Sequence record: MK308676.1
Strand: one strand, 5' to 3'
Length of the DNA: 64,000 nucleotides
The position numbers and the translations under genes are program-made. The notes beneath the pieces are model-generated. The model was not told where the DNA came from and searched no databases. It saw only the letters and a program-made list of their open reading frames with translations. Positions 6,555 through 60,810 of this stretch are shown here, one piece after another; the stretch's first letter is position 1; each line of letters opens with the position of its first letter.

Positions 6555-9290
6555 TTAATGTTTCGCTACAGCGAAGAACTTAGGTGCTGCTGGAGAACCC
6601 ACAGCTAGAACTTCAACGATTTCGCCCGCATGAGTAACAACATGGAAGTAGTTGTCTTCTACTTGCTTAGCGCGCAGTTCTTTAAACGTACCTGAAAGAG
6701 TACGGTAAAGAGTACGGTCTGCATCGTAAGATAGACGACCTAGAGGAATAGATTCTTCTACTGCTGCTACGACTACGTGAAGGTCACGAGTACGCTCAGT
6801 GATGTGGATAGAACCTTCTTCGTCACCGTTAGAATTAGAGAAGTTAGTTAGACCAACTAGTTCTGTCTCGATGATTTCTTGTAACTCACCCGCAACTTCT
6901 TCACCGTGTGCCCACTCGATTACTGACGCATGGTCTGCGTAGAAACTAGTTAGGGTACAAGTTGGGATTGGAGACGAGATACGGTAGCGTAGGCTTTCTA
7001 CGATTAGTTTAGTGAAGATAGCATCACAGTAACGGAACGCACTTGTTTTACCTGAGTCTTTCAGAGCCTTCATTAGCTGAATGAAAGATTGAGATACGTA
7101 AACGTCATCGCCTTCGTACTCTTCATCCGTATCACGTGCTTCTGCTTGCTGAGCTGCAAGTTCACATTGCTCACGGTAAACAGCTAGTAACTCTTCAGGG
7201 ATGTCAGTCATTGTAGGCACTGTTTCCAATGTGAAGCGATGAATCTCGATAGATTCAGACTTCTCATCAGCTACTAGCGCTAAACGACCTAACTCACCCC
7301 AGTCACTTGCCAGACCTTTGTTCTCACTGAACTCTACAGCGAATGCCTTAGGTAGACCTTGCTCAGTAAACTCAGCTAAGTCTTCCGCAGTACCTTCACC
7401 TTCTTCTAGACGCAGAGTGCGCTCGAATTGACCTAAGTGTGCTTCACGGTCCATCCATTTTTCCTTATCGATTAATACTTCGTAAACCGAACCTTCGTCA
7501 TCGTGACCGACTACGACAGTTTTCTCTTCTTTATAGATACCTAGGTCAGAAGCGAATGTGCTGCCAGCGTCTGCACGTAAACCGGTTTGGGTACGTTCAA
7601 CTACGTGGATTACTGTTCCATCGTTCAGAGTCAACGGAACACTGTTTTCTAGTAAGCTAATCACCTTAGTCTCTACAGCGGGAGCCGGTGCATGTGCATT
7701 TTGTGGAGTTGGCTGAGATGCTGAGTAAGGTGCTTGTTTTTCTGCCATACGGCGCTGACCGCGAGTACGGCGAGCCGAAGTCATTGAAGTCGGCTCTGCC
7801 GCAGCAGGTGCCGGTGCTTGACTGTATGCCGGGTTAGCTTGATATGGTTTAGATTGTGCTGCTGGCGTTGTACCTGCGTTACCTTGCGTAGAACTGTAAA
7901 CGTACGCAGGCTTCGATGGCGCAGGTGCTTGAGTACCGCCAAATTCAGCTGGGTTTAAAAGATTGTTTGCGATGCCGTATTCAATCCATTGAGCTTCAAT
8001 CTCTGGATTCCATTCTACGAAGTTAGGCTGGTAGCCTGGGTAAGCATCGTTAAAGATAAGTAGTGGCTGACCGTTAGGTAGGAACATCAACTGGCCATTG
8101 TCTTGCGCATGAATAACTGCAACTTTAGGTAAGAAGTTGTCCGCTAGTAAGAACGGAGAGCCATCACGGCATACCATTGGTACGCGAGCTTCTGCGCAGT
8201 AAACTTCTACTAGGCGTGGCTGTTGGTTATGGTTGTACATTGTAGTTTCCTCTTTATTCGTTGTGGCGGATGATACGCCTAAGTTACGTTTAGGTAGATT
8301 AGATTTACGTTGGTCCAAGACAGAATCTTCTTGTTCGACAAACTCAGGTTCAGCATATCCTGCTCCTAAGTTATCCATGCCGTCGTCGAAAGTATCTGGC
8401 TCAGGTGTTCTTACTGGTTCTGGTTCCATGTCCAGAAGGTTAGACATCGCTTCTAAAGCTGTCACGCGTTTCACTGGTGCAGTGTTTCCTGTTGGGGCAG
8501 CTACTGTGTTTTCACTGCTCACACCAATACGTCGCTGTGATTGTATTTTACGAGCACGGAACGCTTTATCAGCTTTGTTCTGTTCTCGTCTTTCTGCTTC
8601 ATCTATAGCGGCCTGTACTGAAGGGTCGAGGTTTTCCATGGGCTCTTCCGGTATTTCTAACGTCTTTGGCAACGTTCCTATATTTCCGTTTGCTACATCA
8701 CTTAATGTCAACGACGAAGTATCTTGTCGTTCACGAAGCTGACCATTAAAACGCTCATACGTTTCATTTCGTTCCTGTACTGACAGAGAGAAGAACGCTA
8801 GAGCTTTCGCTGCTTGTTCCTGTCCCAACCTAGCACGTTCGGTGTACTGGGCTTTATACTCCGGTGCAATCCCACTGAATAAGGCAGGCTTACGTACGAA
8901 GATATCAGAAAGTATGCGGATTGCTATTTCCGCTGGAAACGATAAGTCATTCTGTAATATAGGTGTAGGATGTTGTTCATCTGCTCCTAGCATTAAGTTC
9001 TCGTAAGCTACAGTTTGAATGAGCTGTTTAGAGAATAGTAATCCTTCAGGTGAGGTGAACGGTGAGTGCATGTCCGGCTCTTTGATGGCTTCATAGACAT
9101 CAATGAGTGGAGAACCGTACTCGTAAAGAGTATCGGCCATGGCATTCACGCCTTGACAGATATAGTCACACAGGACACCGTCTGCTTGACGCACTGGCGT
9201 TAAGCGTAGTTTGGAATCACAGAACCCTTTATTAAGGGCATTGGCAAACTTTAAATCGTAGCCGGGTGTATCTTCGAATATTTGGTCCAT
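6555..9290 (-). CDS. Large hypothetical protein with long low-complexity central region
   Basis: ~911 aa; Q/P/A/S-rich disordered segments; ATG at 9290 (track starts at 9296). Confidence 0.7.
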   Translation of the reverse strand: MDQIFEDTPGYDLKFANALNKGFCDSKLRLTPVRQADGVLCDYICQGVNAMADTLYEYGSPLIDVYEAIKEPDMHSPFTSPEGLLFSKQLIQTVAYENLMLGADEQHPTPILQNDLSFPAEIAIRILSDIFVRKPALFSGIAPEYKAQYTERARLGQEQAAKALAFFSLSVQERNETYERFNGQLRERQDTSSLTLSDVANGNIGTLPKTLEIPEEPMENLDPSVQAAIDEAERREQNKADKAFRARKIQSQRRIGVSSENTVAAPTGNTAPVKRVTALEAMSNLLDMEPEPVRTPEPDTFDDGMDNLGAGYAEPEFVEQEDSVLDQRKSNLPKRNLGVSSATTNKEETTMYNHNQQPRLVEVYCAEARVPMVCRDGSPFLLADNFLPKVAVIHAQDNGQLMFLPNGQPLLIFNDAYPGYQPNFVEWNPEIEAQWIEYGIANNLLNPAEFGGTQAPAPSKPAYVYSSTQGNAGTTPAAQSKPYQANPAYSQAPAPAAAEPTSMTSARRTRGQRRMAEKQAPYSASQPTPQNAHAPAPAVETKVISLLENSVPLTLNDGTVIHVVERTQTGLRADAGSTFASDLGIYKEEKTVVVGHDDEGSVYEVLIDKEKWMDREAHLGQFERTLRLEEGEGTAEDLAEFTEQGLPKAFAVEFSENKGLASDWGELGRLALVADEKSESIEIHRFTLETVPTMTDIPEELLAVYREQCELAAQQAEARDTDEEYEGDDVYVSQSFIQLMKALKDSGKTSAFRYCDAIFTKLIVESLRYRISSPIPTCTLTSFYADHASVIEWAHGEEVAGELQEIIETELVGLTNFSNSNGDEEGSIHITERTRDLHVVVAAVEESIPLGRLSYDADRTLYRTLSGTFKELRAKQVEDNYFHVVTHAGEIVEVLAVGSPAAPKFFAVAKH

Positions 9291-9331
9291 AAGCAATAAC
9301 TGGGCAGCTTACGCTGCCCAGTCCCTATTAG

Positions 9332-10936
9332 TTAAGACAAGTCCCTGATGTTCTGACGCCACGGTTCGAATTCATCTCGGAAGATGAAACGTCCTTCGTT
9401 GTCAACTGGAGTAAATGGATTCAAAGAACCACGTCCCGACGGAGATGCCTTCGTAATGAATGCCCAGCTACAACAGTCAATCATACTGTCGTGCAGTTCA
9501 AACATTGGGTCGGTCATTTCTGAGGACTTCGACTTACCACCACTGCGAGAAGGAATGTGAACAACACGGCCAATCTTAAATAGCTTCTGGTCGGTTGTAG
9601 ATTCAATTACCTGAATCTCTGGATGTCCCGAAGCGATTGTCATCATAATCTTCGGTTTCCATTCACGGTCTAGCTGTCGGTCAATATTGTCTGGTTTCAG
9701 TCTCGCTTTAGCTTGACGCTGAATCGAGAACATGATGTTGAACAACATAGAGCGCACCGGGTACATGACTTCTTCTACAACAGACAGTCGCTTGTTACGC
9801 ATATCTGCAACATTGTTAGAGATTGTCATGTTAGAGAAGTTCGCCATAATGAAGAAGAACAATTCGTTAATCTCCTGCACTTCGATGTTCTGAGCACGTA
9901 GCTTGCGCTGCACTGAACGGTCTAGGTACTGGTGAATTGAATCTAGGTGTTCTTCGACATGTTTGATGGCGTCACGTTCTTCAACTGTTTTCCAGATGAA
10001 TCGAGAAAGCACACGCTTCCACATGAACGGGTCATCAAACTCAGTATAGTCGTAGAACTCTTCTACCCCACACATATCGGTAATATAGAAGATAGAACCG
10101 ATTGCACTCTTAAGAACGCGGTTATTGTAGTCTTCGCGAGGAATCGCTACGCGTAGCCGAGGTGGCTCATATGAACCAGCCGCAATACGACTGCGTGGTC
10201 GCGTACCTGCTGAACTACAGATTACCCATTCACTTTCAGGGAAGTCGACATCGTTTATGGTATCGTCCGTACCGTAAATGATTTCCGTGTTAAAGTAACG
10301 ACGGAATGTCTCAGATAAACCGTGTTCTGCTAGAATGTAGTTTAGTATCTGAGGATGTCGAGTCTTAGGGGCTTCATTCTTTTTGGAATGATGGAGTTTA
10401 GCCCAGTAGTAGTCAATGCTTTCAGTACAGCCATCTGCCAGATAGTAGAACGCTTGACGGTTGAATGTCAGGCGAGCACGTGTAACCGGCATAAAGATGG
10501 AACCGTCTTCAATGGAGAAGAGATGGTCTGTTAAGGTTGGTACCGTATGGTAACGAGAATCGCGCAATAGGAAACAACCATGGCTATCGAAGTATGGTAT
10601 TTCCAAGAAACGCGTCTTAAGCGGACGCCCTTCGAACTTCAGTAAGACTTTAATCATGCGATAGTCATTACGTGCAATTTCAAAGGTGCGTTTATTGCTC
10701 ATTGGTCTCGTATGTTCTGCTAGTCGCTCATAAGGAGTAACCGGCAACCAACCTGCATAAGTAATGCCCGTACCAGATGCCTCTAATGTACGGGACCAAA
10801 TACGTAAGACTTCGTGAACGTAATTCACAAACTTCTTACTCTCTTCTCCTGCAAAGCCTTGAACCACTTTCTGTTCGAACTGCGGCATTACTTCATCCAT
10901 TAGGTCAAGTAAGTCCGGGTCGATTTGTTCAATCAT
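9332..10936 (-). CDS. Non-virion RNA polymerase beta subunit, N-terminal part (phiKZ gp123-like)
   Basis: 534 aa; LEIPYFDSHGCFLLRDSRYH and ITKASPSGRGSLNPF segments typical of this split beta subunit; lies near the capsid gene. Confidence 0.8.
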   Translation of the reverse strand: MIEQIDPDLLDLMDEVMPQFEQKVVQGFAGEESKKFVNYVHEVLRIWSRTLEASGTGITYAGWLPVTPYERLAEHTRPMSNKRTFEIARNDYRMIKVLLKFEGRPLKTRFLEIPYFDSHGCFLLRDSRYHTVPTLTDHLFSIEDGSIFMPVTRARLTFNRQAFYYLADGCTESIDYYWAKLHHSKKNEAPKTRHPQILNYILAEHGLSETFRRYFNTEIIYGTDDTINDVDFPESEWVICSSAGTRPRSRIAAGSYEPPRLRVAIPREDYNNRVLKSAIGSIFYITDMCGVEEFYDYTEFDDPFMWKRVLSRFIWKTVEERDAIKHVEEHLDSIHQYLDRSVQRKLRAQNIEVQEINELFFFIMANFSNMTISNNVADMRNKRLSVVEEVMYPVRSMLFNIMFSIQRQAKARLKPDNIDRQLDREWKPKIMMTIASGHPEIQVIESTTDQKLFKIGRVVHIPSRSGGKSKSSEMTDPMFELHDSMIDCCSWAFITKASPSGRGSLNPFTPVDNEGRFIFRDEFEPWRQNIRDLS

Positions 10937-54864: not shown

Positions 54865-56937
54865 TTATTTTCTTTTGCTAAACACGCTTACGAATACTGA
54901 GCCCATTGCACCTAACAAGTTCTTAACGAACTGGATGGTACGGCTACCGCCTACAGGAACAACGCTTCGGTCCAGGTGCTTATGTTCTAAGAATGGTTTC
55001 TCAGAACGAATCGCATTCTCTAAGGAGTTACGAATAGCGTCTGGGTTGGTCGAGTGGTCAACCTGATAAGCTACTGCTTCACCGCCGATAGATGCGCCCA
55101 AGTTACGAATCTCGGATTCACCCCAGCTACGCGGTGGTTGGCGGTTAGTAGGGAAGGCTACTTTAGTACGTTTATTCGTAGTCGCTGGAAGACCATGTTG
55201 CTGTCGTTGCGCAACAGCTACGGCCATAGGTTTAAACGATGACTTATCAAGCACAATCATCTGCTTAGGACCAATCAGTGCCGGACGAATAGTTCGGACT
55301 TCTTGACCGTCGTAGTTGGTGTACGTAATAGGTGACTTGTCTGGTCGACGATATGCTCTTAGCTTGTTAATCAGTTCACGGCCCAATAAGCCGTTATCTG
55401 CGGGGAACAAGTATCGAACATAAGACTCGGAACACATCTCGGTAAACTTGCGTTTCAGTTCATCCGTGTTCTTAGTGCGAACATACTTAGCATGTTGCTC
55501 TGGCGACACAATCTCCAAGAAGCCCATTGCGTGGTCATAGGCCATTGTCCAATCGTCACATTCTAAATAACGCTTCATGTCTTTCGCGATATCGCGGGCA
55601 CAAGCATTAACGTAACGTTCGTATTCCTGACCTAAGTTCATACGGGCAAAGATTGCATTACCAAACTGTACGACGTCACAGACATTACCGTGGTCATCGC
55701 GTGGCATTTGAGAACGTGGACGAATTTCACAGACAACGCCCTTACATCCGTGCAAGTCTGTAAACTTAGCACCGAACTTCAGGTTGTACATCCATGCAAC
55801 TTCAATCTGCACGTACCACTCATCAATCTGTTTAGCTTTGTGAGTAAACTGAACAGTACCAGTATTGTTGTAACCGCTAACTCGTTGTTGGTTGTTCGGC
55901 TGGTCAGCCAAAGCATAAGTGAGTTCTTCTTCTAAAGCAGGTTCCAGAACAGCGTTCTTGTCATTGCTTCGAATCTTGCGATATAAGTCAACCAGTTTAG
56001 TTGAGTAGTGACTCTTGTGGCCACGATAGTTATCCAGCACTTTCTCCATCGTAGGAGGCGTGTAGCGGAGACGCGATGTTGGTGGTGAAGAGAATACTTT
56101 AATGTCAACTACCCGACCGTCTTTACATTCAGGCGGAGCATAGACACACTCATCATAAACAAAGTCAACTTCGTTAATCATGTCTTCCAACATGTAAACA
56201 CAGTCTAGCTCTTCATCGTACTTACGAGTGGCAAAAAGAATATTGTCGTCACGGATAGGCTCCCCCGGACCAACGAATGGCCGGAAGAGTCCATTTTGGG
56301 TATAACACCCTACGAAGTATCGTTCACGTCCGACTTCTACTTCGCGTTTAGCCATTGCTACTGGTTTCGCTCGTTCTAAGAACTCTTCAGAAACAATAAG
56401 GCCATCCTCAATCACTCCGTTGAGAGAAAGGTTAGCTACTTCCGCATTAAGTGCGGTAGTGTAGACACCTCCTTTATTAGCGCCATTTGAGTGAGCTAAG
56501 ATTGTATCCTTAGCAATGGCCATTCCTGGACGCAGTTTTCTGCCGATGTCTGTGACTTTCAGCTCTGCTCCAAATACGTCGTGCGCGCGATAGTACCCTT
56601 CGAGTTTCAACGAGCCCCATTCACCGGTATCGTCATTACGGTAAACGATTGTTTTGGCTGATGCTTCTCGTTGGGCACGGTTCGCAGATACGTGGTGCGA
56701 AATAACGTCTTCGATGATAGCGTTACACGGCATCTTAATCGCCATGGTAGTTTGAGACATCTGTTTCTCATAACCATGGAAGCCGATTGGAATATCCGGC
56801 TGTGCAGGCATTAGGGCCTGCTGCGACTGTGATGACGCCATGTGGACACGCGGTGCTGAGTTAGCTGCAACAAAAGGGTTTAAGGCTTCTGTTGTACCAA
56901 CCAGTTCTGAACGTTTCTTAAGCTTAGTGATTTCCAC
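54865..56937 (-). CDS. Non-virion RNA polymerase beta subunit, C-terminal part (phiKZ gp71-73-like)
   Basis: RVHMASSQ..QA, IEDGLIVS, GAKFTDLHGCKGVV, RMNLGQ, WGESEIR; uninterrupted 690 aa. Confidence 0.9.
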   Translation of the reverse strand: MEITKLKKRSELVGTTEALNPFVAANSAPRVHMASSQSQQALMPAQPDIPIGFHGYEKQMSQTTMAIKMPCNAIIEDVISHHVSANRAQREASAKTIVYRNDDTGEWGSLKLEGYYRAHDVFGAELKVTDIGRKLRPGMAIAKDTILAHSNGANKGGVYTTALNAEVANLSLNGVIEDGLIVSEEFLERAKPVAMAKREVEVGRERYFVGCYTQNGLFRPFVGPGEPIRDDNILFATRKYDEELDCVYMLEDMINEVDFVYDECVYAPPECKDGRVVDIKVFSSPPTSRLRYTPPTMEKVLDNYRGHKSHYSTKLVDLYRKIRSNDKNAVLEPALEEELTYALADQPNNQQRVSGYNNTGTVQFTHKAKQIDEWYVQIEVAWMYNLKFGAKFTDLHGCKGVVCEIRPRSQMPRDDHGNVCDVVQFGNAIFARMNLGQEYERYVNACARDIAKDMKRYLECDDWTMAYDHAMGFLEIVSPEQHAKYVRTKNTDELKRKFTEMCSESYVRYLFPADNGLLGRELINKLRAYRRPDKSPITYTNYDGQEVRTIRPALIGPKQMIVLDKSSFKPMAVAVAQRQQHGLPATTNKRTKVAFPTNRQPPRSWGESEIRNLGASIGGEAVAYQVDHSTNPDAIRNSLENAIRSEKPFLEHKHLDRSVVPVGGSRTIQFVKNLLGAMGSVFVSVFSKRK

Positions 56938-57026: not shown

Positions 57027-57374
57027 ATGGCACTTACAATAGACACGCTTCTGCCTACCGTCGATAGCACGGCTGATGGGTATAACTCGCAGTCTTTCAG
57101 AGAGTCTTTAGAAAGCATGATGCAATATCTAAAGAAACATAGTACCACAACTGTTCAAGTTATGGGCGACTACGAGAACGTACGTTTTAAAGGTGACCTA
57201 GCCGGATGGTTGTTAACGCTTAACATTGGCGAAAACTACCATTGGGTGGTCGCTAGAATGAATGACTTAAGTTCTCCTAGTGATTACGAAGGACTTACTA
57301 AGTCTTTCCGTATTCCAGACACTACTTTAATCGATACGTTACTACAAAAACATCGACAAAAGCTCCGAGCTTAG
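57027..57374 (+). CDS. Small protein, LysM/baseplate-wedge (T4 gp53)-like
   Basis: 115 aa; YHWVVARMNDLSSP...FRIPD pattern. Confidence 0.45.
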   Translation: MALTIDTLLPTVDSTADGYNSQSFRESLESMMQYLKKHSTTTVQVMGDYENVRFKGDLAGWLLTLNIGENYHWVVARMNDLSSPSDYEGLTKSFRIPDTTLIDTLLQKHRQKLRA

Positions 57375-57442: not shown

Positions 57443-59248
57443 TTAGCGGTACGTACCTGCGTACTGGTTGTGCGAGATTGGTTTACGGTAGTCGTTCTGA
57501 TATTGCGGAGCAGACTTACCGTAGCTAGGACCAGTGGTATTGTAGCCGTACGCTTGTTGCGATGGGTTACCATTACCTGGCTGGCCTGTGCTAGGACCGT
57601 AGTGCATTGCATGCGATGCGTTGCCGTGACCCTGATGTCCTGCTGGTTGACCATATGTCGAAGCATGGCCATAAGCTGGTTGGCTGTTCGCTTTAGCGGC
57701 TTGAGTGCGCTCACGACGTAGTTGGTCCACTTCACGTTGTGTTGTAGGGTCCAAGTGAGGAACGTCGCCATTGTACTCAATCTGTCCATCTAGGCCACGA
57801 GCAATAAGGAACAGTTGTTTAGGTAGGTCTTTCTCGAGTAGAACAATTGGCTTGCCCGAACTACGATAGCGCACTACTTCACCTAAGGCATCTTTAAGGT
57901 AGACTTCTTTCTCGCGGCCACCGATTACGATTTCTGAAGTATCACTTTCGCATTGAGGTTTTGAGCGCGCCCCAATAACCGGCATCAGGTTTTCCTGTTG
58001 TGGCTTTTTTGGCATCTCTTGAGCCTCCGCAGCTGCTTTACGGTATTCCGTAGGCGCAGGAGCGGATGCTGGTGTAGATGCTAGTTTAGTTGGTTGTTTA
58101 CGCATGCTCTGACCAAGCAGAGATGTTTTACGCATTGCGTTTGCTGTTTGTGACATGTTTTCTTCTACCGCGTTTAGTTGAGGTGTTTCTACAACAGGTG
58201 CCGCTACTTCCACTGGAGTATCAGCAACTGTCTCTACAGGTGCTGCAACTTCAGGCGCAGGCTTAGACTTAAGTTTGATTTCTACTGGCTTAGCTTTAGT
58301 CGCTTCAGCCGATGCTGCCGATAGGTCTTCAGACTTGCCAGAGGCAGCACCAACGTTACCTTCAAAAGGAACTTTGATTTGTTCTACCAAGTCATCTGCA
58401 TTATCAAGCAGTTCGGTCCAGTCAGTTGGAATACCTAAGTCTTTAACATACTTAGCTCCTAACTTCTTAAGAAGGCCGTTTAGCTGGTCGGCTGTAGACT
58501 TATAAGTCATCAGGAATGATTGGAAGTAAGGTGCAGTATGAGATACTGTGCCTTGCAAGTGAGCTTTAATACCTTGCTCTTCTGTTTGACCTAGAGCAAT
58601 CTCAAATGCTTTCATTACCGTTAGGTACTGAAGCTTAGAAGTTGCTTTAACGCCAAAGATGCGACGGTTCTTTTCGTCACGTTCTAGAACTGGCATAGAA
58701 AGTTCACACCAACGAATGCCGTTTACATCTTCGCGCTTACGGCGGCCCATGTTCAGACGAAGAACCGGACGCTCACCAGCGATAGAAGTGTGTGCACGGA
58801 ATACTTTCTCTGCGTACTCAAGTACTTTATCACGTTGCTTACTGTCTTTAACAGAAGGCATGTCGCCAATGACTTTCATTGCAGAGTTCTTAATCTTGCC
58901 CTGATTCTCATAATCAACAGACAAGTGAATTAGTGCTTCTGCGATACCTACTACCGTAGCGCAGATTTTAGCAGAGCCAAGAATGACCAGACGGTTCATT
59001 ACTTCTGATTGTCCAGCGAATGGAGACTCAGCGAATGGATGGAACTTGATGGTAGTACCGTCTTCTTCCAGGCGTAGAACTTCTTCAGTAGGAAGAACGA
59101 TTGGGAGGTTAGCTTTGTTGCCACCACGGCTAACTGGGATTGTTACTGGAATAACGTCGCTACCGTAGAAAGCTGCTAGATGGCCTTCTTCGTTAAGCTT
59201 CACGTCGAAAGATTCTAGTAGCGCTAAGTATAGGTCAGTAAGTTTCAT
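57443..59248 (-). CDS. Conserved protein downstream of PicA-like gene, with long disordered and prion-like C-terminus
   Basis: 601 aa; folded N-terminal half, then P/A/T-rich and Q/G/Y/S-rich regions. Confidence 0.65.
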   Translation of the reverse strand: MKLTDLYLALLESFDVKLNEEGHLAAFYGSDVIPVTIPVSRGGNKANLPIVLPTEEVLRLEEDGTTIKFHPFAESPFAGQSEVMNRLVILGSAKICATVVGIAEALIHLSVDYENQGKIKNSAMKVIGDMPSVKDSKQRDKVLEYAEKVFRAHTSIAGERPVLRLNMGRRKREDVNGIRWCELSMPVLERDEKNRRIFGVKATSKLQYLTVMKAFEIALGQTEEQGIKAHLQGTVSHTAPYFQSFLMTYKSTADQLNGLLKKLGAKYVKDLGIPTDWTELLDNADDLVEQIKVPFEGNVGAASGKSEDLSAASAEATKAKPVEIKLKSKPAPEVAAPVETVADTPVEVAAPVVETPQLNAVEENMSQTANAMRKTSLLGQSMRKQPTKLASTPASAPAPTEYRKAAAEAQEMPKKPQQENLMPVIGARSKPQCESDTSEIVIGGREKEVYLKDALGEVVRYRSSGKPIVLLEKDLPKQLFLIARGLDGQIEYNGDVPHLDPTTQREVDQLRRERTQAAKANSQPAYGHASTYGQPAGHQGHGNASHAMHYGPSTGQPGNGNPSQQAYGYNTTGPSYGKSAPQYQNDYRKPISHNQYAGTYR

Positions 59249-59301: not shown

Positions 59302-60810
59302 TTAAAAGTTAGACATTGCCGTAGCCATGCCTGGGTCGACGGATTGCGAGAATACCGTATCCAGCATCATGCCTGTCTTATTGGCTGTGTCTAGTAGGTG
59401 GTTCTCGTCGACTGCGATGGTTGATGCAGTCAGACCATCAGCATAGTTAGGTGCTGTGTATACTTCAAGTGGGCGGCCATACAGACCAACTGTGATTGTG
59501 GAACGACCAAATAGGCTACAGTCCATTTGGATGTGGAAGTCAATGCCTGGCTCAGGGATTACTTCAGGGATTACTTCATGTACGATTGTTGCACATAGAC
59601 GGTCGTACAAATCAGTGTCGCGGATAGAATCGAAGATTGGGATTAGGTTCTCAATCGCAATATTAACGCCGCCGTCTGGAGTTGGCCCCCATGCAGTGAA
59701 TGAACACGATACCGTTAGTGCCGAAGTCATTACCGATGGTACTGCGTGACTCAGTGCGTGAGCAAGACGAGTCTCCTCGTTTGCACCGCCCCAACCATTC
59801 ACGTCATTAGCTCGTATCATTTGCGAGTTAGGTGGAAGACGTACACACTGGGTTACTTCGTCTAGGTATGGGAACATGCCCATAAGTTCACCCATAGTTA
59901 AGTAGCCGATTTCTGCGTAAGAAGTACGCTCCGCTAGACGACGGAAAACCGGTGACGTTTCTAGGTCAGCCTCACGTGCCACAGATGCAGCAGTGCCCAA
60001 CGTAAACAACTCATTGTGTTGGCCGTCAGTTTGACGATACGCATGAGAGTAACCAGTCAAGACTTTAGATACCCACTCAGACGACATCTCGTTCTTACGA
60101 GAAGATGCCATACCGTACTCACCATTACCAGAACGGATGGTTGTACGAGTATCATGCACTTGGCCAGGGTTGCTTACTTTACTCTTCTGTAGCGAGTATA
60201 GCGCATCTACCGGACGCATCGCTGTAGCTGATTCAGTTGTGCCAACTGTATAGCCGCCTAGCTCGATGTGCGTAGGGCGAAGAATCTGGTTGATGTTACG
60301 GCCCGTGTAAACAGACTGTGCACCGTAAGTACCTACTGTTTGGCGCTCTGAGACTTTCATATGAGAGTTCACTTGAAGCGTCATGTTGTAGTCCCAGTGC
60401 TGAGAGTTTGCACCGTTACCGATAGTGCGACCAGTATGGTCTGTGTAACCAGTGATTACTTCATCCATTGTCTGTGATGGGGTAGTCACACGGAACAATA
60501 GATAGAAAGCGAAACGGTGGGCATCCCATCCGTTATCAATAGCAATCTTACCTTGAGAAGAATGAGACTGCTGAACGATGTCACGTGCAACTTGGCGGAT
60601 GGCAGCTGCATTAATAGAAATGCCGTCTGCTGTAATGTCACGCAATTTGCGGAACGTGTTATCGTTGAACGTCATTACGTGTGGGCGGTAATGAACTGGG
60701 TTTTCTGCCGGTACTTCGATGAAGAACGCTTTCACCAAGTCTACTTGGATGTTCTGAGAAGCGTGCATGCCTTCAGCGATTGGGTTCAGTTGTTGGGCAT
60801 TGTAGTCCAT
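59302..60810 (-). CDS. Probable phage-nucleus protein import factor PicA/Imp1 (phiKZ gp69-like)
   Basis: 502 aa immediately downstream of the gp68 homolog; call rests mainly on synteny. Confidence 0.55.
   Translation of the reverse strand: MDYNAQQLNPIAEGMHASQNIQVDLVKAFFIEVPAENPVHYRPHVMTFNDNTFRKLRDITADGISINAAAIRQVARDIVQQSHSSQGKIAIDNGWDAHRFAFYLLFRVTTPSQTMDEVITGYTDHTGRTIGNGANSQHWDYNMTLQVNSHMKVSERQTVGTYGAQSVYTGRNINQILRPTHIELGGYTVGTTESATAMRPVDALYSLQKSKVSNPGQVHDTRTTIRSGNGEYGMASSRKNEMSSEWVSKVLTGYSHAYRQTDGQHNELFTLGTAASVAREADLETSPVFRRLAERTSYAEIGYLTMGELMGMFPYLDEVTQCVRLPPNSQMIRANDVNGWGGANEETRLAHALSHAVPSVMTSALTVSCSFTAWGPTPDGGVNIAIENLIPIFDSIRDTDLYDRLCATIVHEVIPEVIPEPGIDFHIQMDCSLFGRSTITVGLYGRPLEVYTAPNYADGLTASTIAVDENHLLDTANKTGMMLDTVFSQSVDPGMATAMSNF

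Follow-up and report, generated by a model that had tools for sequence, protein, structure and literature searches.

A new small beta-rich domain probably shared by the gp70/gp64 homologue and a second protein of Vibrio phage vB_VmeM-Yong

In chimalliviruses, the protein family represented by phiKZ gp70, PhiPA3 gp64 and 201phi2-1 gp126 belongs to a set of three conserved proteins that associate with the shell and whose genes adjoin that of the import factor of the phage nucleus; of these three, it alone has been assigned no role. PhiPA3 gp64 is located at the nuclear shell and was recovered in ChmB pull-downs (PMC10643120), and phiKZ gp70 is listed among the nuclear proteins (bioRxiv 10.1101/2024.03.27.586873). 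No function of the gp70/gp64 family has been published, and the family is not mentioned in a 2026 review. The locus considered here lies in a stretch of 64,000 nucleotides from sequence record MK308676.1, hereafter the window, which corresponds to the first 64 kb of the genome type of Vibrio phage vB_VmeM-Yong (Yong), whose host is Vibrio mediterranei. Two proteins encoded in this window, a member of the gp70/gp64 family termed protein B and a clade-specific protein termed protein A, very probably each carry one copy of a real, homologous and independently folding domain of ~70-90 residues, which is referred to as the module.

Proteins A and B are found with 99.9-100% identity and at identical coordinates in four Yong genomes of ~278-291 kb (tblastn). 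Judged by its gene content, Yong is a nucleus-forming chimallivirus, since it possesses a phiKZ-type major capsid protein, split genes for its non-virion RNA polymerase (nvRNAP) as well as a homologue of phiKZ gp69 (PicA/Imp1). Protein A comprises, in this order, an N-terminal domain, a linker, the module, an A/P/S/Q-rich linker and a C-terminal domain, while protein B consists of an N-terminal domain of ~300 amino acids, a disordered linker, the module and a G/A/Q/Y-rich tail. The two proteins and their modules are positioned as follows:

6555-9290, minus strand: protein A, 911 amino acids, clade-specific (open reading frame and GenBank coding sequence)
7956-8231, minus strand: module in protein A, residues 354-445, compact and beta-rich with a C-terminal helix (AlphaFold2, hhalign and profile hidden Markov model)
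8052-8222, minus strand: core of the protein A module that aligns to protein B, residues 357-413 (hhalign)
57443-59248, minus strand: protein B, 601 amino acids, homologue of phiKZ gp70, 201phi2-1 gp126 and PhiPA3 gp64 (tblastn, phrog_3520)
57689-57916, minus strand: module in protein B, residues 445-520, with a beta-rich core (445-501) aligned to protein A and a helix (501-520)

By sequence comparison, protein B is not an orphan but a homologue of phiKZ gp70 and PhiPA3 gp64. Residues 1-318 match 67 other chimallivirus records (tblastn), including 201phi2-1 gp126 (9e-9), which is itself annotated as 'similar to phiKZ gp70', and BONAISHI ORF81 (2e-20). The match of protein B to phrog_3520 (E 8.7e-40) ends at residue 431, ahead of the module. 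In addition, the B gene has the gp69 (PicA/Imp1) homologue on one side and the nvRNAP beta genes on the other, an arrangement that recurs in 201phi2-1, BONAISHI, pir03 and metagenome loci. Protein B thus resembles phiKZ gp70, PhiPA3 gp64 and 201phi2-1 gp126 in its N-terminal domain of ~300 amino acids, its gene position and its long disordered tail rich in aromatic residues, Q, N, G and P, whereas the folded module within this tail is found only in the Vibrio-type clade and is lacking in 201phi2-1 gp126.

The original prediction had proposed that a stretch of ~50 amino acids recurs in both proteins, that it lies in either case within a disordered region ahead of a Q/P/A/Y-rich tract, and that it represents an unnamed, small, beta-rich domain which may target the two proteins to one structure. 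Both peptides in question are indeed found on the minus strand at precisely the stated positions, 8064-8207 and 57758-57907, inside the respective open reading frames. Alignment scores that do not rise above those of shuffled controls had been named as evidence against the proposal, and on the pair alone this is the outcome: BLASTP assigned this alignment E = 1.0 and did not rank it as the top local alignment of the two proteins, and the Smith-Waterman score of 39 was reached in 4 of 2000 shuffles (65x65 residues), which fails correction for the space scanned in the original prediction. Considered in isolation, the pair favours the view that two disordered regions resemble each other by chance or by composition and that no real module exists.

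A different picture emerges once family information is included. Full-length profiles of the A family (9 sequences) and of the gp70 family (7 sequences) were compared by hhalign and gave a single match, A357-413 to B445-501, with a probability of 91% and E 1.1e-6; profiles restricted to the module gave E 2.2e-6, and without realignment the match runs through an insertion in protein A as far as the terminal helices. Controls were clean: reversed profiles scored 23-24 (E ~0.1), and the best score in 60 trials with shuffled tail columns was 22.6 each, compared with 63.6 for the real match. Moreover, a hidden Markov model built from the gp70-tail modules of other phages, from which protein B was omitted, retrieved protein B (6e-17) and protein A (3.6e-4) among the six-frame open reading frames of the 290-kb Yong genome, followed by the next candidate at E 0.73. 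Reciprocally, the A-family profile matched the gp70 tail of BONAISHI at E 3.4e-4. The evidence for common descent of the A and B modules may be called reasonable but not overwhelming, the similarity being significant only with family information.

The second line of evidence is structural. An AlphaFold2 model computed from eight A-family sequences only depicts residues 354-445 of protein A as compactly folded, with numerous short strands and a helix at the C-terminal end (mean predicted local distance difference test score, pLDDT, 94.7; predicted template modelling score 0.80). Full-length protein B, modelled from six gp70-family sequences only, reached a mean pLDDT of 52, and its module is the only ordered island in the tail (pLDDT 53-77 versus ~30). 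In the first half of the B module (~30 residues), the strand pattern resembles that of protein A almost element for element, and a helix follows, so that structure prediction of both segments agrees with the proposed relationship. When BFVD was searched by Foldseek, the A model retrieved, in this order, the protein itself, an 864-amino-acid protein, a 601-amino-acid protein (probability 1.0, TM 0.58) and a 981-amino-acid protein. Going by length and accession series, the 601-amino-acid protein is probably the BONAISHI gp70 homologue and the 981-amino-acid protein probably the BONAISHI A homologue; the 864-amino-acid protein is probably the A relative of pir03.

Among solved structures, the A model found no significant match, with a best Foldseek E of 1.2 against the PDB and a best VIA-align Z of 2.5 over 48,161 chains, the latter being unusually low, as Z 7-8 is typical even of models that lack a clear match. 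The module is reminiscent of small beta-rich adaptor domains (SH3, Tudor, chromo-barrel, Sso7d/Cren7) and of three-strand-plus-helix DNA-binding domains with regard to size, its many short strands and its portability on flexible linkers; it differs in that neither the three-strand-plus-helix domains nor SH3, Tudor, chromo-barrel, OB-like or Sso7d/Cren7 domains provide a significant structural match or a sequence-family match. The prediction that the module is unnamed holds in so far as no Pfam or PHROG model covers it, and it constitutes a new small domain family with a fold that lacks a match among solved structures.

Of the features initially ascribed to the shared stretch, its beta-rich character is borne out by the compact fold predicted for the A segment, a folded island among disordered linkers. 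The sharing as such also stands, while the size of ~50 amino acids proved too small: including the C-terminal helix, the module spans ~92 amino acids in protein A and ~70-75 in protein B. Its setting is as had been described, with disordered flanks in protein B (pLDDT ~30), flanks in protein A that are presumably disordered according to composition and weak alignment, and tracts rich in A, P, S, Q, Y and G that follow both copies:

7656-7955, minus strand: A/P/S/T/Q-rich low-complexity linker after the A module, residues 446-545 (A 22%, P 15%, S 10%, T 9%, Q 9%)
57446-57688, minus strand: C-terminal tail of protein B, G/A/Q/Y/S/P-rich and charge-poor (composition)

Residues 446-545 of protein A align poorly across the A family. 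The tails of the gp70 family share a composition, their last ~90 residues containing 8-16% Y/F/W and being Q/N/G/P-rich and nearly free of charge in 9 of 10 homologues. Such charge-poor aromatic tails occur in protein B of the window as well as in P0001, P0002, P0004-P0007, P0010 and P0011, the exception being P0008 with 40% charged residues. Among the nine homologues with this type of tail is gp126 of Pseudomonas phage 201phi2-1, which has no module. The composition is prion-like or FG-like and is kept far beyond the Vibrio-type clade.

Within the otherwise gap-rich and weakly aligned gp70 tails of the clade, the module stands out as an alignable block, which nine gp70 homologues have kept. 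Members of the A family have likewise conserved it, and there it continues into a family-specific extension with the terminal helix, and at one turn the BONAISHI gp70 copy is identical to protein A in 6 of 7 residues. Its signature reads h-x-D-x5-P-h ... G-x-P-h-x-h ... P-x3-h ... G-x3-[FY]-x3-G-x-P-x-L. Across both families (20 modules), the conserved columns comprise the hydrophobic core, Gly/Pro turns and one Asp, in keeping with a scaffold on which the surface could evolve freely. This Asp, the sole polar position conserved in both families, is present in 90% of the 20 modules and is replaced by Cys365 in protein A of Yong (8196-8198, minus strand). A further observation concerns the gp70 homologues of C-ZP2022 and pir03 (L007 2501-4408 and L008 2501-4417), which display a module-like second stretch after the module, ~60-100 residues from the C-terminus, with a hydrophobic run, N-G turns and G-x-P; the combined module profile does not detect it at E <= 1, and it may be a degenerate second copy.

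The net charge of all 20 modules lies in the range of -8 to 0, and basic residues are conserved at no position. This property bears on the idea that the module is a nucleic-acid-binding domain, which would keep the two proteins attached to phage DNA or, close to the nvRNAP, to nascent mRNA. Such a role would suit the location of both genes in nvRNAP gene clusters and could draw on a very weak resemblance to three-strand-plus-helix domains, namely the N-terminal domain of Tn916 integrase (Z 2.3) and the arm-binding domain of HPI integrase (Z 2.0). Z values of 2-2.5 are, however, at the level of noise, and acidic or neutral modules throughout make protein docking the more likely function, which leaves nucleic-acid binding very unlikely.

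The distribution of the module provides a third line of evidence. A combined module profile, which contains no BONAISHI or pir03 sequence, yielded exactly two matches each in Yong, BONAISHI, pir03 and the IMG/VR contig G001, one per family. No third copy was found in the Yong genome (next E 3.2). A match in 201phi2-1 at E 0.02 contains an in-frame stop and was dismissed, and nothing credible was found in that phage. The pattern of two copies per genome in phages outside the profile, together with the profile-profile E of 1e-6 with clean controls, the reciprocal profile matches, the high-confidence fold and the structural match to a gp70 tail, renders the probability of a mere chance resemblance close to negligible, despite the insignificance of the pairwise comparison. 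Yong, BONAISHI, pir03, C-ZP2022 and metagenomic relatives, which form a small marine clade of Vibrio-type chimalliviruses, are the only carriers of the module; the finding is modest but real. As a portable tail domain that only one other protein per genome has in common, the module offers an experimental handle on the gp70/gp64 family, and it illustrates cleanly how jumbo phages shuffle domains from one linker region to another.

With respect to its history, module identity is nearly equal between the families (20.4%) and within the A family (22.6%). In a maximum-likelihood tree, A-type and gp70-type copies are separated with one change and with moderate support (64/89). The tree is thus consistent with a split by the protein that carries the module, which points to a single ancient duplication or transfer, after which both genes kept their copies by vertical inheritance. 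The deep split would also be in line with an inherited domain devoid of a common function, where the copies diverged after that single event and adopted protein-specific roles, such as intramolecular packing or the binding of different partners. The restriction of between-family conservation to core and turn residues fits this view, as do the extra insert and extension of the A copy that are absent from the gp70 copy. On the other hand, both copies are strictly co-retained across a clade in which these proteins share only ~20-45% identity, and both occupy a similar setting composed of a linker plus a low-complexity tract, so that complete functional divergence appears unlikely.

The role that we consider most fitting is that of a protein-protein docking domain tethered by flexible linkers, as suggested by these linkers, the conserved core and turn residues and the acidic or neutral charge. 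The domain is made up of short beta strands with Gly/Pro turns between them and an amphipathic helix that closes it; one copy is placed in the gp70/gp64-family protein, within the disordered tail at its C-terminus, and the other in the central linker of protein A. Docking would bring proteins A and B to the same partner or site, for which the shell of the phage nucleus or a transcription hub would be the likeliest candidates, given the association of the gp70/gp64 family with the shell and the location of both genes in nvRNAP gene clusters. Targeting of both proteins to one structure, as had originally been supposed, is plausible, with indirect support from the shell association of the B family in PhiPA3 and from the constant presence of one module per family in each genome. 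Taken together, a real homologous folded domain with a tethered docking role is about an even proposition.

Several points weigh against this reading. The gp70 homologues of phiKZ-type phages have no module, which consequently is not needed for the core role or the localisation of the family, and phiKZ gp70 showed no Imp1 binding in pull-downs (bioRxiv 10.1101/2024.03.27.586873). The conserved residues are structural, so that through divergence each copy may by now bind something different. With 9 and ~9 sequences the two families are small, the hhalign probability is 91% and not 99%, and the B module is modelled with moderate confidence only (pLDDT 53-77). A predicted complex of the A module with the B module scored 0.02 against a mark of 0.32, the fold of the partner itself being uncertain, and this result is evidence neither for nor against binding.

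This last result touches upon a self-associating sticker, in which the modules would bind each other, whether by pairing of A with B or by homo-oligomerisation, and would drive, jointly with the low-complexity tracts, a condensate or mesh at the nucleus, protein A being physically tethered to the gp70 homologue at the shell. The presence of exactly two copies in each genome, one per family, speaks for such an arrangement, as do the low-complexity tracts that flank both of them, including the aromatic, charge-poor gp70 tails described above. In addition, the neighbouring shell protein ChmC is reported to form condensates with RNA (10.1101/2023.09.22.559000). Against this, the domain models confidently as a monomer, and no coiled coil or other obvious oligomerisation feature is apparent; self-association accordingly retains a small but real chance.

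A related proposal, a long shot, assigns the module the part of a folded anchor in a nucleoporin-like arrangement, pinning two proteins with low-complexity tracts to one site of the chimallin shell. The cohesive aromatic/Q/G/P-rich tracts would in this case form a selective phase for mRNA export or protein import, the charge-poor aromatic gp70 tail would be the phage counterpart of FG repeats, and protein A would have been recruited via the shared domain in this clade.

Import could also be served in another manner, if PicA/Imp1 read the surface of the folded module and thereby let the two proteins into the phage nucleus or kept them at it. The B gene directly follows the PicA/Imp1 homologue, and chimallivirus import has been reported to recognise folded cargo surfaces instead of terminal signals (PMC13282480). 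Nevertheless, the gp70 homologues of phiKZ and PhiPA3 are nuclear or shell-localised without the module, and the lack of Imp1 binding by phiKZ gp70 points in the same direction; such a licensing function is quite unlikely.

The neighbourhood of both genes corresponds to what had been predicted, protein A following the gene of a gp123-like nvRNAP subunit and protein B that of the PicA/Imp1 (gp69) homologue:

9332-10936, minus strand: nvRNAP subunit upstream of A, homologue of phiKZ gp123 and 201phi2-1 gp203 (phrog_2943 'polymerase', E 1.5e-104; tblastn to gp203, 2e-46)
54865-56937, minus strand: nvRNAP beta-like subunit downstream of B, homologue of phiKZ gp71-73 (Pfam RNA_pol_Rpb2_6; phrog_3295, E 7e-151)
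59302-60810, minus strand: PicA/Imp1 (phiKZ gp69) homologue upstream of B (BLASTP to 201phi2-1 gp125, 'similar to phiKZ gp69', E 4e-28; phrog_3141)

Protein A belongs to a family of nine members only, according to an exhaustive HMMER profile search of 1.84 billion representative proteins, and its profile also detects members in BONAISHI, pir03 and C-ZP2022; in 201phi2-1, it found no match at E <= 0.01. No Pfam or PHROG family matches protein A; its resemblance in Pfam to an EDC4-like beta-propeller (E 0.053) fell short of the family cut-off and was set aside as noise. Word-index searches with the whole protein and with residues 340-465 returned only protein A itself, blanks that carry little weight given limits of length and word, and neither its C-terminal domain nor the module had a usable look-alike in the ESM Atlas. 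The open reading frame call opens at a TTG, which lies upstream of the annotated ATG (9290) by two codons, the TTG stretch covering 9291-9296 on the minus strand; the annotated ATG appears the likelier start, because relatives align from it.

In every locus with upstream DNA, the A gene is preceded by the genes of the major capsid protein, of a protein of 380-536 amino acids and of the gp123-like nvRNAP subunit. Its position directly after the latter is that of phiKZ gp124 and 201phi2-1 gp204 (phrog_15010), which are also of comparable size (696 versus 911 amino acids). Homology to gp124 is, however, not demonstrated: hhalign gave a probability of 4% and E 0.01, none of the nine A members matches phrog_15010 at E <= 1, and the A profile has no match in 201phi2-1, so that the assignment is not supported. 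gp204 also lacks the module. It may be noted that the C-terminal ~200 residues of the A family (6555-7211, minus strand) are co-linear, end to end, with the C-terminus of gp204 (L029 7655-9742) in this same low-scoring alignment, which hints that protein A may be a very diverged gp124 orthologue. phiKZ gp124, along with two other early proteins, binds host DnaX and FtsZ according to a study as cited in PMC11849849.

As for protein B, a search of viral contigs with the gp70 alignment recovered only one IMG/VR phage type, which was already known, and no related loci were found there with the single protein. Its N-terminal domain, taken from the full-length model, gave heterogeneous fold matches, the best being a designed helical protein (Z 6.2) besides hibernation-factor-like ones (Z ~5); these middling matches support no conclusion. 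Between the gp70 homologue and the nvRNAP beta gene lies a gene of 115 amino acids on the plus strand (57027-57374), whose position and size are kept in BONAISHI (ORF82c), C-ZP2022, 201phi2-1 (gp127) and three metagenomic relatives (114-117 amino acids). In two metagenomic relatives (L024 7302-11779 and L025 7863-11788), the nvRNAP beta gene downstream of gp70 is apparently split into pieces of ~406 and ~281-303 amino acids, which are separated by an open reading frame of ~460 amino acids with faint NUMOD and I-HmuI-like matches in one of the two; this suggests the insertion of an intron or homing endonuclease, which Yong lacks at the same site.

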